Assembly (NCBI RefSeq): GCF_002571385.2
Contig: NW_019217967.1
Span: 321,210 to 376,282, forward strand
Source: Stylophora pistillata
Lineage: Eukaryota
Reading direction: 5' to 3'
DNA length: 55,073 bases
The notes beneath the pieces were generated by a model. That model was given only the letters and a program-made list of their open reading frames with translations. It searched no databases and was not told where the DNA came from. Position numbers and translations under genes: made by a program. Below, piece after piece: positions 5,467 to 14,811 of this stretch. Positions within the stretch are counted from its first letter, which is position 1. Each line of letters starts with the position of its first letter.

Positions 5467-8400
5467 TTAGTCGGTTTTTTCATATAAGACTTCAACCTCG
5501 TTTGGTGAGAAATATTCACTTCCTGCCATGAATGTGTTGGTGAAGTCGGAGTCAGGACTTTGACCTTTGGGTGCGCTGTAGGACATTCCGATGTGTGCAT
5601 AGGATTTTTTACCCAGGTGAGCGTTGTCTACAATTGTAAGATCGCTTCCTGAACCAAATACTGGTCCATTTCTGTCACAAGACATCATAGAAAATCCGAT
5701 GGGACTGTCATATCCGAGTTGGGGCAGTTTCGTTGGTCCCCAGCCAGGCTTGTTTACTAGTGAAAACATGAACGATGTTGGACTGTGCACTCGTCCACAA
5801 TAACCTTTTTTAGCTGAAAAGTGAAATTGTAAGAAAAAGTTATTGTAAATTATTTGTTAAGTGAGATGAATTAACTAGAATAATTATAAAAGGATAGCAA
5901 CGAAAATGCATCAACAACCGATAGGATATACTCAAACAACACCCGAAAAAAAAATTAAACCAAAGAGTTATGTGACGGTATGAAGTTAGATAAAATCCAG
6001 CATTTGAAATTTCTAATTTCTGTCTTGTTATGTGCTTCAAACAAAGTTGACTCGGTGTTGTTTGCTCGCCAGAAATGTTAAATTAATCAGAATAATTCTT
6101 CGCAAAAAAGATAGGGAGGCAAGATAATTTTAAACAATAGAGACAAAACATCGTCATGTTGGCCAGTATTTAGTTTGTTCAGTATGATTTAATACTCATT
6201 CTTATGTAATTAGGATGTGGTTACTATATGAGTTCGAATTCTGAAGTCATTTAAGATTAAACTATCGCGATAAGTTTCGTTACTGTGTCTGTCTTATTTA
6301 ACTCCCGTTAGTGGAGGAGTGTAGTTTGTCTGCAGACCTTCATTTGGACCAACGCGAAAGTTATTGTTTTGTGTCTGTCTTATTTAACTCCCGTTAGTGG
6401 AGGAGTGTAGTTTGTCTGCAGACCTTCATTTGGACCAACGCGAAAGTTATTGTTTTGTGTCTGTCTTATTTAACTCCCGTTAGTGGAGGAGTGTAGTTTG
6501 TCTGCAGACCTTTATTTGGACCCACGCGAAAGTTATTGTTTTGTGTCTGTCTTATTTAACTCCCATTAGTGGAGGAGTGTAGTTTGTCTGCAGACCTTTA
6601 TTTAACTCCCGTTAGTGGAGGACTGTAATTTGTCTGCAGACCTTCATTTGGACCCACGCGAAAGTTATTGTTTTGGGTTACTGTGTCAGAGGTTGACTTG
6701 GTTGATCGGAAGCACTGATTATGGTGTTTTTTACTTAGTGAACAGAATTGAGCAGCAATACTGAGTCCAAAAGTGAGAACACAGAATTCGGAGGAAGCAG
6801 TACAACACAGAATTCAGTTGGGGAAGAGAACATGAAGAGATTTATCTCAGTTAAGAGTCAGACAACAAGAGTTACACAGAGTGAAAATAGATTGATGCAA
6901 GTAGAATCGATTTTGTATTTGAGAACCGATACATAAAAGAAGAACAGTTAAAGACAGCTCGATAGTTTGGGGCGACTTTCGCCAGGTGGGTGCGGTCTGC
7001 TGCCATTTCCTATAACATTGCGACCCAAAATACTTGAAAAGTTTCGTCGTAGCAATCAAACTAATCAACAAAATAAGAATACTTCTGAAAAAAAAAGAAC
7101 ACCTCATATAAATTTCAACCACTCCCGTTTAAACAAGAAGGCGCGCTATATAAGTAAGTCTTCCCTGGGAAGACCTAGGCTCATTTGTCACTCACCGTTG
7201 ACGTGTGCGGGTCAAATTTAAGTGCTGGTAGACGAACAAAAGGAGTTAATGAGATATCTATTGTTTACTTCCACCAGCATGGTAGCATGAGGTAACGTGC
7301 GAACCACCTACTTCGATCTCAAATTTACCGCCACAAATAAAGACAGTTTCCATTGGAGAGAGGAAATAGAAATCTCAAAAATTCTTGTATTGTGATGAGG
7401 ACATAAAACAATTTTGAGGAATGCGCCAGCTGTTCACTGCTTTGGAGTAGCTGTAGCTCAAGCTGACTTGACTCTAAGAGTTTTACATCACACGACGGTT
7501 GATTGACAAATGGTCTAGTGGGACATAAGGCTCATTTTATAGCGCGCCTTCGTGTTTAAGTGAGCTTTTTTAACCCATGAAATTTAAGATAAAACTCATT
7601 AACTTTTTCTCTGCCCTTACTGACAATCAATTCAGAGGAACAAGTTTTGCAGGCAAATAAAGCAGAGAGCACCACCTATCAAACATCAAACAATTACACT
7701 AGAATGTTTTGCCAAAGGATTTTGAAAACCTCCTGTTTTTAATTCGAAGTTTTCCTTCTTGTAGTCTAAAGAACCAGCTCAAAACGTTTTAAAAACATTT
7801 CAGAGTAGGTTGAATATAAAAAGAGTGATTGCGGCTTACATTGGCTTACCTTAGCACCTGCCATACATGTTTTGTTAGGTCTACAAACTCATATTCTAAT
7901 TCGCAAGGGTTTGACTCACTAACGCGAAAAAGGAACTTAAAAGAGACCTTGAAGATCGTTACTTACGATGTCTTTTCCATGATACACCAGCGTATCCACC
8001 AAAGATGTAAACTCCAACACGGACAATTACCAAAGTCGGCCCTTTGTTATCACACAATTGGTGGAATTTAGAGCCTTCCCAACCATGTTTTGATGCCTTC
8101 CAACAGGTAACCCAGGAAGAGGTTCTGCTCCTTACAACAGGGTATAACCATTTGTTTAGGGCTATGATGTGAGTTTCATTGTTTCCAATTATGCTTGATT
8201 GTCCCGCAACTAAAGATGAAAGAGAAATACAGTAAGACCTGAGGTTAGAAATAAGTTTAGGTTCCATGCAGTCCCTGGGTTTAATTACTAGAAATGATTG
8301 TGCGAGTTTGGTTCCCGGTAAATAAAGCATTAAAGGCCTACTTGCCCACCAAAAAATCTAGCTGCATTTCCTTAGAGGTGTACTTTTGTGTGCTATGTGT

Positions 8401-14400: not shown

Positions 14401-14811
14401 CATTTTTGCTATGCCCTTTTTCTAAGTCAAAGGCGACAGAATGATATCTAAACAACGAGTATTCTCTTCACAGGATGGAGACATAAATAATTAAAATCAA
14501 ATTGTGCCAGAATGACGCAATGTTTGTTACATAACAATACTACGTGTAAACAATGACTTACCAAAGGTAGAATCAGGCCTTTCCTTAGTACTTGTTGTGG
14601 GTGCAGTCTCATAGAACTGTAACTTCTCTTCCACAATCGTATCTATATTAGTTTTCAGGTCATCTTCAATCTGCTGAATACTTTTTTCAAGCGCTTTCGA
14701 ATTGTTATAATCGAATTCGAATCTCACAAACAACAATGACACGAGAGCCAACGATATCACAGAAATTGCCAAGGAACTTTTGCTTATCTTGTCACCAGAT
14801 TTCGTAGCCAT
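5467..14811 (-). CDS. Type II membrane collagen-Ig-Ig-TLDc protein, 598 aa, 5 exons
   Basis: Exons 14811-14562, 10220-9540, 8822-8547, 8209-7967, 5813-5467; all introns GT-AG and phase 1; 1797 nt open. [18 protein letters not shown], furin-type RERR, 29 Gly-X-Y, two Ig domains (C..W..YIC), TLDc motifs ([45 protein letters not shown]). Confidence 0.88.
6284..6674. repeat. Minisatellite, 86-bp unit, about 4.5 near-identical copies, in intron 4
   Basis: Unit tgtgtctgtcttatttaactcccgttagtggaggagtgtagtttgtctgcagacc...cgcgaaagttattgttt starts at 6284, 6370, 6456, 6542, followed by a partial copy. Confidence 0.95.
7221..7310. mobile_element. Short hairpin-type MITE remnant
   Basis: Imperfect inverted arms tgctggtagacgaacaa / ttgtttacttccaccagca. 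Confidence 0.4.
10243..10280 (-). mobile_element. 3' tail fragment of a tRNA-derived SINE
   Basis: aaaaagatg...tcttgtcacgagcgtaggg is the reverse complement of a recalled coral SINE tail (cccacgctcgtgacaaga). Related to the copy at 18306. Confidence 0.4.
10960..14400. repeat. Ancient degenerate ~450-600 bp tandem module making up most of intron 1
   Basis: Ordered motifs recur: cctga(c/t)cacgaata at about 11074, 11885, 12953, 13468; gacctctt(t)ggaaaa..cgctgt-like at about 11267, 12100, 12663, 13903, 14315; followed by ataagataaca..aaatcgagt. Also present in the left paralog (about 314, 1620, 1863, 2283). Confidence 0.7.
13663..13861. mobile_element. TTAA-specific (piggyBac-like) MITE
   Basis: TTAA at 13659-13662 and 13862-13865; ends CCCCTTAA...TTAAAGG. 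The paralogous empty site near 1817-1840 (aagctctttaaaaggaaagaaattc) has a single TTAA. Confidence 0.85.

Follow-up and report, generated by a model that had tools for sequence, protein, structure and literature searches.

The locus described here raises the question of what a TLDc domain might do at the end of a collagen stalk, behind a predicted signal anchor and two immunoglobulin (Ig) domains. To our knowledge, the characterised TLDc proteins are all cytosolic and act on the V-ATPase, and the binding or activity of the fold itself is still debated. The gene, LOC111332027, lies on the minus strand of a 55,073-nucleotide stretch of the Stylophora pistillata genome (contig NW_019217967.1, positions 321,210 to 376,282; this whole stretch is hereafter called the window, and positions refer to it). 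It encodes a 598-residue 'uncharacterized protein' (XP_022793018.1/PFX24179.1, P0267 in our set), to which UniRef has attached the automatic name 'Collagen alpha-4(VI) chain'. We consider it rather probable that this product is a type II, trimeric, sheddable display stalk carrying a TLDc head, likely serving in multivalent recognition or adhesion.

An earlier note on this DNA had proposed that five exons splice in frame into a collagen-Ig-Ig-TLDc protein, and both the gene structure and public RNA data bear this out. All five exons (250, 681, 276, 243 and 347 nt from exon 1 to exon 5; Table 1) lie where the note had placed them, between positions 14811 and 5467; the introns are all GT..AG and all in phase 1, and the total of 1797 nt corresponds to 598 codons plus TAA. 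An in-frame stop lies 26 codons before the ATG at 14811, and the exon 1 donor reads GTAAGT. P0267, which was used as the reference sequence for whole-protein analyses, contains the five exon translations exactly (residues 1-83, 85-310, 312-402, 404-483 and 485-598), with one residue at each junction. Similarly, a transcript-derived protein of 507 residues (P0152) runs from residue 8 of exon 2 to exon 5, again with one residue per junction, and its sequence cluster includes the 598-residue P0267.

Twenty public runs contain the stretch, 10 of which are recorded as RNA, and contigs from four polyA RNA runs (four studies) were aligned to positions 5350-10350 (5001 letters). The joints 8209|8547 and 8822|9540 were found in all four runs and the joint 5813|7967 in three, with CT..AC ends on the plus strand, equivalent to GT..AG on the gene strand. 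A single 2276-nt contig (run X3, record 19) covers exons 2 to 5 and proceeds past the stop codon into the 3' untranslated region (UTR). The junction between exons 1 and 2 emerged from the loose ends of contigs at 10221, which in three runs carry a 30-mer exactly matching positions 14563-14592, the 3' end of exon 1. The note had left room for separate transcription of the TLDc exons; given the contig from exon 2 to exon 5 and the RNA joints, they share a transcript with the collagen/Ig exons, and the gene is real and expressed.

These data also bear on the suspicion that adjacent collagen/Ig and TLDc genes were wrongly joined, or that the locus is a decaying chimera. One RNA contig, from run X14, speaks for it by passing from exon 4 into intron 4 with no 5813|7967 joint; but this joint is present in the three other runs, from three other studies, and one contig covers exons 2 to 5. 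In addition, the frames are all open, the introns are all in phase 1, the same architecture recurs in at least six other genera, and TLDc is the best conserved part between paralogues. In view of the spliced contigs and the conservation across genera we rejected this explanation, which we regard as exceedingly improbable. The X14 contig (7495-8209; 11 bases are deleted at 7564) is most simply explained as RNA that had not been spliced; if translated, its frame would stop two codons past exon 4 and yield a protein with half a TLDc domain.

Pfam scans of the complete P0267 returned Collagen (168-223), Ig (228-297), I-set (313-397) and TLD (413-592). The TLD match (PF07534) is one continuous alignment to profile positions 9-166 of 170, with 63.7 bits versus a cut-off of 24.5. 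Taken exon by exon, exon 2 matched Collagen (3.6e-16) and Ig_3 (7e-14), exon 3 matched I-set (2.6e-9), and exons 4 and 5 matched the two parts of the TLD profile given in Table 1 (3.7e-11 and 0.006, respectively). The Pfam scans of P0267 gave no match to a Fibrinogen_C, olfactomedin, SRCR, C-type lectin or TNF domain; the head is TLDc, with four cysteines (438, 455, 489 and 529) and the sequon N413-E-T. Each of the features in the note's list (short tail, transmembrane segment, neck, RERR, Cys pair, 29 Gly-X-Y triplets, two Ig domains and a complete TLDc domain) was recovered. A sequence search of the PDB with the full protein found collagen and Ig matches among the 60 listed.

On which side of the membrane, then, does this head lie? 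The short basic tail has a net charge of +2, the segment 13-31 a mean Kyte-Doolittle hydropathy of 2.22 and the C-terminal flank a net charge of -1, a distribution which fits an N-in signal anchor. P0267 further contains six N-x-S/T sequons, and collagen and Ig domains are modules of the secretory pathway. Related architectures point the same way: of 35 models that start with Met and carry an extracellular-type TLDc (one joined to collagen/Ig, EGF, C-type lectin or discoidin partners), 21 possess a hydrophobic leader or anchor, as compared to 1 of 33 KCTD-type models and none of the 5 B-box-type or 8 FN3-type models. Since signal anchor, collagen, Ig domains, sequons, co-varying Cys pairs (described below) and the leaders of sister architectures concur, the TLDc head is predicted to lie outside the cell or in a lumen, in keeping with the structural part of the note's proposal.

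A tree of 102 TLDc domains, obtained by a short, quick search, placed all 35 extracellular-type domains, together with two short models whose annotation lists TLD only, in one group (Shimodaira-Hasegawa-like approximate likelihood-ratio test, SH-aLRT, 92). This group adjoins the B-box type and stands apart from the KCTD, BTB-BACK and FN3 types, and the partner modules are intermixed inside it. Such a topology fits a single relocation of TLDc to the outside, after which modules were shuffled repeatedly; an exon structure entirely in phase 1 is in agreement with this.

The cysteines of the group are distinctive. C438 is found in 35 of 35 extracellular-type domains; all 36 KCTD-type TLDc domains have Leu, Ile, Ala or Val at this position, and none has Cys. 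Its likely partner, C455, is universal among the TLDc domains compared, while C489 and C529 are found as a pair in 18 of the 35 extracellular-type domains and are jointly missing in 12. The additional pair of the second Ig domain, C334/C365, is likewise jointly present or jointly absent across the family alignment. The head would thus be disulfide-stabilised, to judge from these patterns. In addition, the tandem paralogues share 69-70% identity in exon 4 and 62-64% in exon 5 versus 53% in exon 2, and the head therefore appears to be under constraint, being conserved at least as well as the stalk.

The AlphaFold2 (AF2) model of P0267, built on an 80-row alignment, contains two Ig domains and a TLDc domain at 414-596 with a block-mean predicted local distance difference test (pLDDT) of 85-98. 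The fold search with this full model gave, among the matches listed, tandem-Ig adhesion molecules only. The TLDc fold was therefore examined in a relative rather than in P0267 itself, namely P0004 from Pocillopora meandrina (same clade, about 48% identical, pLDDT 96.2). This model matched only solved TLDc structures, with ranks 1-12 at E-values of 1e-9 to 5e-8 and template-modelling scores of 0.60-0.82, and every kind of solved TLDc was represented: Skywalker/TBC1D24 (6r82), NCOA7 (8ar6 and 7obp), zebrafish OXR2 (4acj, a beta-sandwich with flanking helices) and mEAK7 on the V-ATPase (7une/7u8o/7u4t) fall within this range. NCOA7B on the V-ATPase (7uzg), Oxr1p (7fde) and Rtc5p (9nn1) followed at 2e-7 to 8e-4, and the best non-TLDc fold reached 0.18. 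Sequence identity to the solved domains is only 16-20%, and a PDB sequence search with the TLDc-only relative found mEAK7 alone (E 0.001).

The head thus belongs to the same Pfam family and has the same predicted fold as OXR1/Oxr1p, NCOA7, TBC1D24/Skywalker, mEAK7 and Rtc5p. It differs from the characterised domains by the clade-specific C438 and the optional second Cys pair. Moreover, OXR1, NCOA7, TBC1D24, mEAK7 and Rtc5p are cytosolic and bind V1, whereas the TLDc of P0267 is predicted to follow a signal anchor, collagen and Ig domains. Solved V-ATPase complexes place TLDc on the cytosolic V1 sector. A head outside would have no access to V1 and should therefore have another partner than that of its characterised relatives; most likely it is a neofunctionalised binding module.

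The same comparison speaks to the proposal that the protein resides in a phagosome, symbiosome or lysosome and has a V-ATPase-linked or oxidative-stress role from the lumenal side. In endocytic compartments a type II protein has its ectodomain in the lumen, the characterised TLDc proteins all act on the V-ATPase, and complexes with it (7une, 7u8o, 7uzg, 7fde and 9nn1) are among the fold matches. In these complexes, however, TLDc sits on the cytosolic V1, out of reach from the lumen; the identity to V-ATPase-bound domains is as low as stated above, and the clade's cysteines and its EGF, C-type lectin and discoidin partners are typical of surface or secreted proteins. We consider a lumenal role of this kind very unlikely.

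Turning to the stalk, the 29 Gly-X-Y triplets form a single uninterrupted run, preceded by C128 and C135 (C-x6-C) and followed by C224. In the AF2 model a helix at 11-69 is followed by disorder at 72-111, including RERR, and by a short helix at 113-130; the collagen segment has low confidence, as is expected for collagen folded as a single chain. When three copies of residues 33-228 were modelled together, the homotrimer reached an interface score (interaction prediction score from aligned errors, ipSAE) of 0.41, as opposed to 0.00 for the best of three controls, so that the trimer anticipated in the earlier note is what the model returns. The mark that this model passed had been attained by 21 of 30 proteins whose solved structure is a pair of identical chains and by none of 23 solved single chains (17 of 29 versus 0 of 30 in a eukaryote calibration). 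The trimer runs share at least 77% of their contacts, with a partner pLDDT of at least 63. The confident interface comprises the collagen (136-224) and a heptad-like face of the short helix (111, 115/116, 119/120, 123/124 and 127).

A basic motif (RERR, RKRR, RHRR, RNRR, RRRR or TVRR) is aligned N-terminal to the collagen in 11 of the 11 family members that cover this region. In a strict scan for [RK]-x-[KR]-R, 8 of 12 models passed, the shortfalls including partial or mis-modelled N-termini. Furin-type cleavage is accordingly predicted from sequence at R101-E-R-R104; the motif lies in the linker between two helices, so that after a cut the freed trimer would still include its collagen, its Cys knot and helix 111-130. 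At positions 9863 and 9917, within the collagen of exon 2, the assembly has T and A where each of the four RNA runs has C and G; these variants replace Leu with Pro and Asp with Gly at X/Y positions and leave the Gly-X-Y register intact.

Short collagens with terminal cysteines also call to mind cnidocyst or secretory-granule components such as the minicollagens and nematogalectin, in which case the N-terminal region would be a leader and a propeptide cut at the basic site. Nematocyst proteins indeed have short collagen helices, terminal cysteines, a C-terminal head and propeptides ending at basic sites. P0267, however, has neither the Cys-rich domains nor the polyproline flanks of the minicollagen type, and its pro-region would be long (about 70 residues) and helical. 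All named matches are to stony corals and one sea anemone; medusozoans, which do have cnidocysts, gave none, though word-based searches could have missed them. A cnidocyst function therefore seems to us quite improbable.

Several better known systems are built along similar lines. SR-A, MARCO, COLEC12, gliomedin, ectodysplasin-A (EDA) and collagens XIII/XVII/XXIII/XXV all have a short tail, an anchor, a helical neck, collagen and a head, and MARCO is among the collagen matches of the database search. EDA, gliomedin and the membrane collagens also carry a furin-type shedding site. In SR-A, the colmedins and EDA, however, the heads are SRCR, C-type lectin, olfactomedin or TNF domains and none has Ig domains between collagen and head; apart from Gly-X-Y, neither these proteins nor the membrane collagens have sequence kinship to P0267. 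From its predicted signal anchor and conserved R-x-R-R, P0267 may share the type II orientation and shedding site of collagens XIII/XVII/XXIII/XXV; these have several interrupted collagenous domains instead of one uninterrupted run of 29 triplets. Collectins, ficolins and C1q share the logic of a collagen trimer multiplying a weakly binding globular head; they differ in having a cleaved signal peptide, in forming further oligomers through N-terminal cysteines and in their heads (C-type lectin, fibrinogen-related and gC1q).

The closest known kin are the CniFLs (cnidarian ficolin-like proteins) of anthozoans, which the earlier note did not name: its comparison with colmedin/gliomedin, ectodysplasin and collectin/ficolin/C1q holds for the general layout and misses them. 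CniFLs, first described alongside the Aiptasia genome (cited in PMC5094078) and surveyed in actiniarians (PMC5094078), have a transmembrane domain, collagen, Ig and fibrinogen layout (PMC5094078) and are putative pattern-recognition receptors; in Exaiptasia they are up-regulated on Vibrio infection (PMC7654579). Like P0267, they combine an N-terminal transmembrane domain, collagen, one or more Ig domains and a C-terminal globular head, and they are likewise hexacoral and variable in copy number. Their defining head is fibrinogen-related, whereas P0267 has TLDc and is therefore not filed as a CniFL. CniFLs have one to three Ig domains, most commonly three, as compared to two in P0267, and for a TLDc head a link to the lectin-complement pathway cannot be deduced.

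The profile search itself retrieved collagen-Ig proteins with a Fibrinogen_C head, the published CniFL kind, for example P0349 ('Ficolin-like protein 2', Anthopleura buddemeieri; Fibrinogen_C 5.6e-77) and P0340 and P0372 from Oculina; the match in P0372 is weak (26.8 bits versus a 22-bit cut-off, positions 5-90 of 221). Aligned with P0267, the proteins P0349, P0345 (Oculina) and P0347 (Orbicella) have their parts in the same order: a transmembrane segment, a basic site (R-x-R-R in P0349), the short helix and C-x6-C are followed by collagen, which ends next to a Cys. P0345 and P0347, both from robust corals, also share with P0267 the extra cysteines of the second Ig domain, in 'LCC' and 'CL'. 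The 137 N-terminal residues of P0267, which are neither collagen nor Ig, match P0346 (5e-31), P0345 (3e-7) and P0347 (1e-5), and the anchor and neck are detectably homologous to their counterparts in collagen-Ig proteins of robust corals whose head matches fibrinogen weakly. The first Ig domain of P0267 is 47% identical to that of P0345 and P0372, and only 25-41% identical to that of the Acropora, Montipora and Porites proteins with a TLDc head. Stalk and head relationships therefore conflict, which indicates, as far as sequence comparison goes, an exchange of heads on a common stalk.

A CUB head on a collagen-Ig stalk was found in precomputed Pfam annotation. In addition, P0351 (Montipora foliosa, 561 residues) has the same collagen-Ig-Ig stalk with a C-terminal PHR domain (2.9e-25). 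PHR is a fold mainly of intracellular proteins (Highwire/PAM, BTBD1/2), and P0351 would provide, after TLDc, another example of a domain from 'inside' being presented on the outside. The collagen-Ig stalk would then be a general display platform, the heads seen here being fibrinogen-like, TLDc, PHR and CUB.

The architecture search showed that Collagen + Ig + TLD proteins form a family of stony corals and sea anemones. Such proteins are found in Pocillopora meandrina, Montipora capricornis, Porites lobata, P. evermanni, P. harrisoni, Oculina patagonica, Acropora millepora and A. muricata, and in the sea anemone Actinostola, under source names such as 'uncharacterized', 'hemicentin-2-like', 'perlecan-like' and 'MAM domain-containing ... 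-like'; the corals belong to several scleractinian families and presumably span both major lineages, 'robust' and 'complex', and the anemone lies outside Scleractinia. The nearest TLDc relatives also combine the domain with C-type lectin and EGF ('Aggrecan core protein'), EGF arrays ('Fibrillin-1'), discoidin ('lactadherin-like'), EGF and Ig, or Ig and Sushi domains, and in the ESM Atlas the Ig + TLD and EGF + TLD clusters come mainly from Cnidaria.

Within S. pistillata, the TLD profile matched at least 152 places of the genome, many of them in tandem clusters. Exon 5 found a neighbour on the same contig at 65% identity and about 30 loci at 44-52%, and exon 1 found five further loci. The neighbour, XP_022793023.1 ('hemicentin-1-like', P0290), is a head-to-tail tandem paralogue of 606 residues with the same five-exon layout.

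The matrix-like names suggest yet another explanation, a structural or adhesive component: a membrane collagen whose shed ectodomain enters the mesoglea, the basement membrane or the skeletal organic matrix, where the Ig and TLDc domains would make protein-protein contacts. A type II anchor, a basic cleavage site and collagen are the established membrane-collagen layout, the tandem I-set pair resembles Ig pairs of Robo, MuSK, sidekick and titin, the automatic names (collagen alpha-4(VI), hemicentin-like, perlecan-like) agree, and the architecture occurs mostly in stony corals. It also occurs, however, in a sea anemone, which has no skeleton; the collagen domain is single, short and uninterrupted, unlike the several interrupted ones of membrane collagens; and a gene that is duplicated in tandem, with many paralogues and swapped heads, is more typically a member of a recognition family. 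Moreover, the gene goes unmentioned in the S. pistillata skeleton proteome (PMC7115838; paper and a few supplements). A matrix role of this kind, contacts included, is in our judgement unlikely, though it deserves more weight than the organelle and cnidocyst proposals.

We therefore return to the display stalk, which could work as follows. The 12-residue cytosolic tail and the anchor at 13-31 would send the remaining 565 residues or so into the secretory pathway. The membrane-proximal helix (to about residue 69), helix 111-130 and the C128/C135 knot would align three chains in register, allowing the 29 Gly-X-Y triplets (138-224) to zip into a collagen triple helix that would present three Ig-Ig-TLDc arms at the cell surface. 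A furin-type convertase might then cut R101-E-R-R104 in the disordered linker and release a soluble trimer retaining the trimerising helix and the Cys knot. By analogy, the role would most likely be multivalent recognition or adhesion of an extracellular target, be it a microbe, a symbiont, a cell or the matrix, because fibrinogen-headed proteins stand on the same stalk and because of the tandem duplication, the number of paralogues and the head swapping. The note had raised pattern or symbiont recognition, which is likewise a conjecture.

A number of points weigh against this interpretation. We know of no TLDc domain with a known extracellular ligand, so that a recognition role is argued from the architecture and from the analogy with CniFLs. 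Topology, trimerisation, cleavage, disulfides and ligand binding are predicted, and N-glycosylation at the sequons is putative. The N-terminal segment might be removed as a signal peptide instead of serving as an anchor, in which case the head would remain outside but the membrane and shedding steps would fall. The trimer model was made with three copies and calibrated with two, and, solved structures being rich in collagen helices, its score may owe something to what the model has memorised; it is a likeness and not a proof. With regard to the CniFLs, the N-terminus of the anemone protein P0349 has no BLAST-detectable similarity to that of P0267, the layout alone being common to both, and CniFL ligand binding is itself unproven (PMC7654579). 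Finally, neither the accession nor TLD appears in the text and a few supplements of the S. pistillata cell atlas (PMC8162421) or of the skeleton proteome (PMC7115838).

A broader proposition, which we put forward tentatively and hold to be somewhat doubtful, is that hexacorals have made TLDc a secreted, disulfide-stabilised, ligand-binding head, giving a so far unrecognised family for innate recognition or adhesion whose binding is independent of the V-ATPase. If this were true, the head would be deployed in dozens of genes per genome on interchangeable extracellular scaffolds of the CniFL-type collagen-Ig, EGF, C-type lectin and discoidin kinds. The leader-bearing clade offers an independent handle on the intrinsic binding properties of the fold. 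For coral biology, it adds a tandemly duplicated, head-swapping family to the candidate surface receptors, linked through the CniFL-type stalk to proteins proposed for pathogen and symbiont recognition. The gene is short and expressed, which makes secretion, trimerisation, shedding and binding directly testable.

As for novelty, the note had called the architecture undescribed. Literature searches on TLDc in corals and cnidarians, on TLDc with collagen or in extracellular settings, on PF07534 and on the accessions, with incomplete journal coverage, returned no description of an extracellular TLDc, and to that extent the claim stands; the gene and its relatives are already in RefSeq and other public databases under uninformative automatic names. 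What is new is a TLDc predicted to be outside in a whole hexacoral clade with its own Cys signature and, judging from domain order, a CniFL-type stalk bearing a TLDc head.

Table 1. Features of LOC111332027 and of its tandem paralogue in the window (AF2, AlphaFold2; UTR, untranslated region)
Feature	Window position	Strand	Content or basis
Exon 1	14562..14811	-	Codons 1-83 + 1 nt; 12-residue basic tail, predicted signal anchor/transmembrane segment (13-31), neck
Predicted signal anchor/transmembrane segment (exon 1)	14719-14775	-	Residues 13-31; hydrophobicity
Helical membrane-proximal neck (exon 1)		-	To about residue 69; AF2 helix 11-69
Exon 2	9540..10220	-	Linker with R101-E-R-R104, helix 111-130, Cys knot, collagen, C224, Ig domain 1
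R101-E-R-R104 (exon 2)	10159-10170	-	Disordered linker
29 Gly-X-Y triplets (exon 2)	9799-10059	-	Residues 138-224
Ig domain 1 (exon 2)		-	Residues 228-310
Exon 3	8547..8822	-	Ig domain 2 (I-set) with additional Cys pair C334/C365; joints on both sides in RNA
Exon 4	7967..8209	-	TLDc N-terminal half (Pfam profile 9-77), sequon N413-E-T, C438, C455
Exon 5	5467..5813	-	TLDc C-terminal half (profile 108-166), C489/C529 pair, TAA at 5469-5467
3' UTR	5350..5466	-	RNA contig; 631 more letters would extend it to about 4720
Exon 1 of tandem paralogue XP_022793023.1	2535..2834	-	P0290 residues 1-100 match at 100%; remaining exons beyond the window start

Some further observations concern the TLD expansion. 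Dense tandem TLD arrays lie on genome contigs C66, C424, C99, C819, C575, C938 and C933, and genome matches to the N-terminal half of the profile mostly end near profile position 77-80, which suggests an intron position common to the expansion. One S. pistillata paralogue of the Collagen-Ig-TLDc type (P0339, 1126 residues, 'Retrovirus-related Pol polyprotein') is merged with reverse-transcriptase domains, probably through a retroelement insertion or a merged gene model. Outside the animals, a protein of 4133 residues from a Chlorobiaceae metagenome-assembled genome (P0003) contains 19 separate stretches resembling the C-terminal half of the TLDc of P0267 (E 1.7e-29).

Intron 4 of LOC111332027 contains a 432-bp interspersed repeat (7128-7560). 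No Rfam match was found at positions 4500-15500, which include this repeat. Scored copies number more than 40, at 94-97% identity, a first look gave 972 candidates genome-wide, and the summed depth of polyA RNA contigs reaches about 44,000; the repeat is probably a young, transcribed, non-autonomous element.

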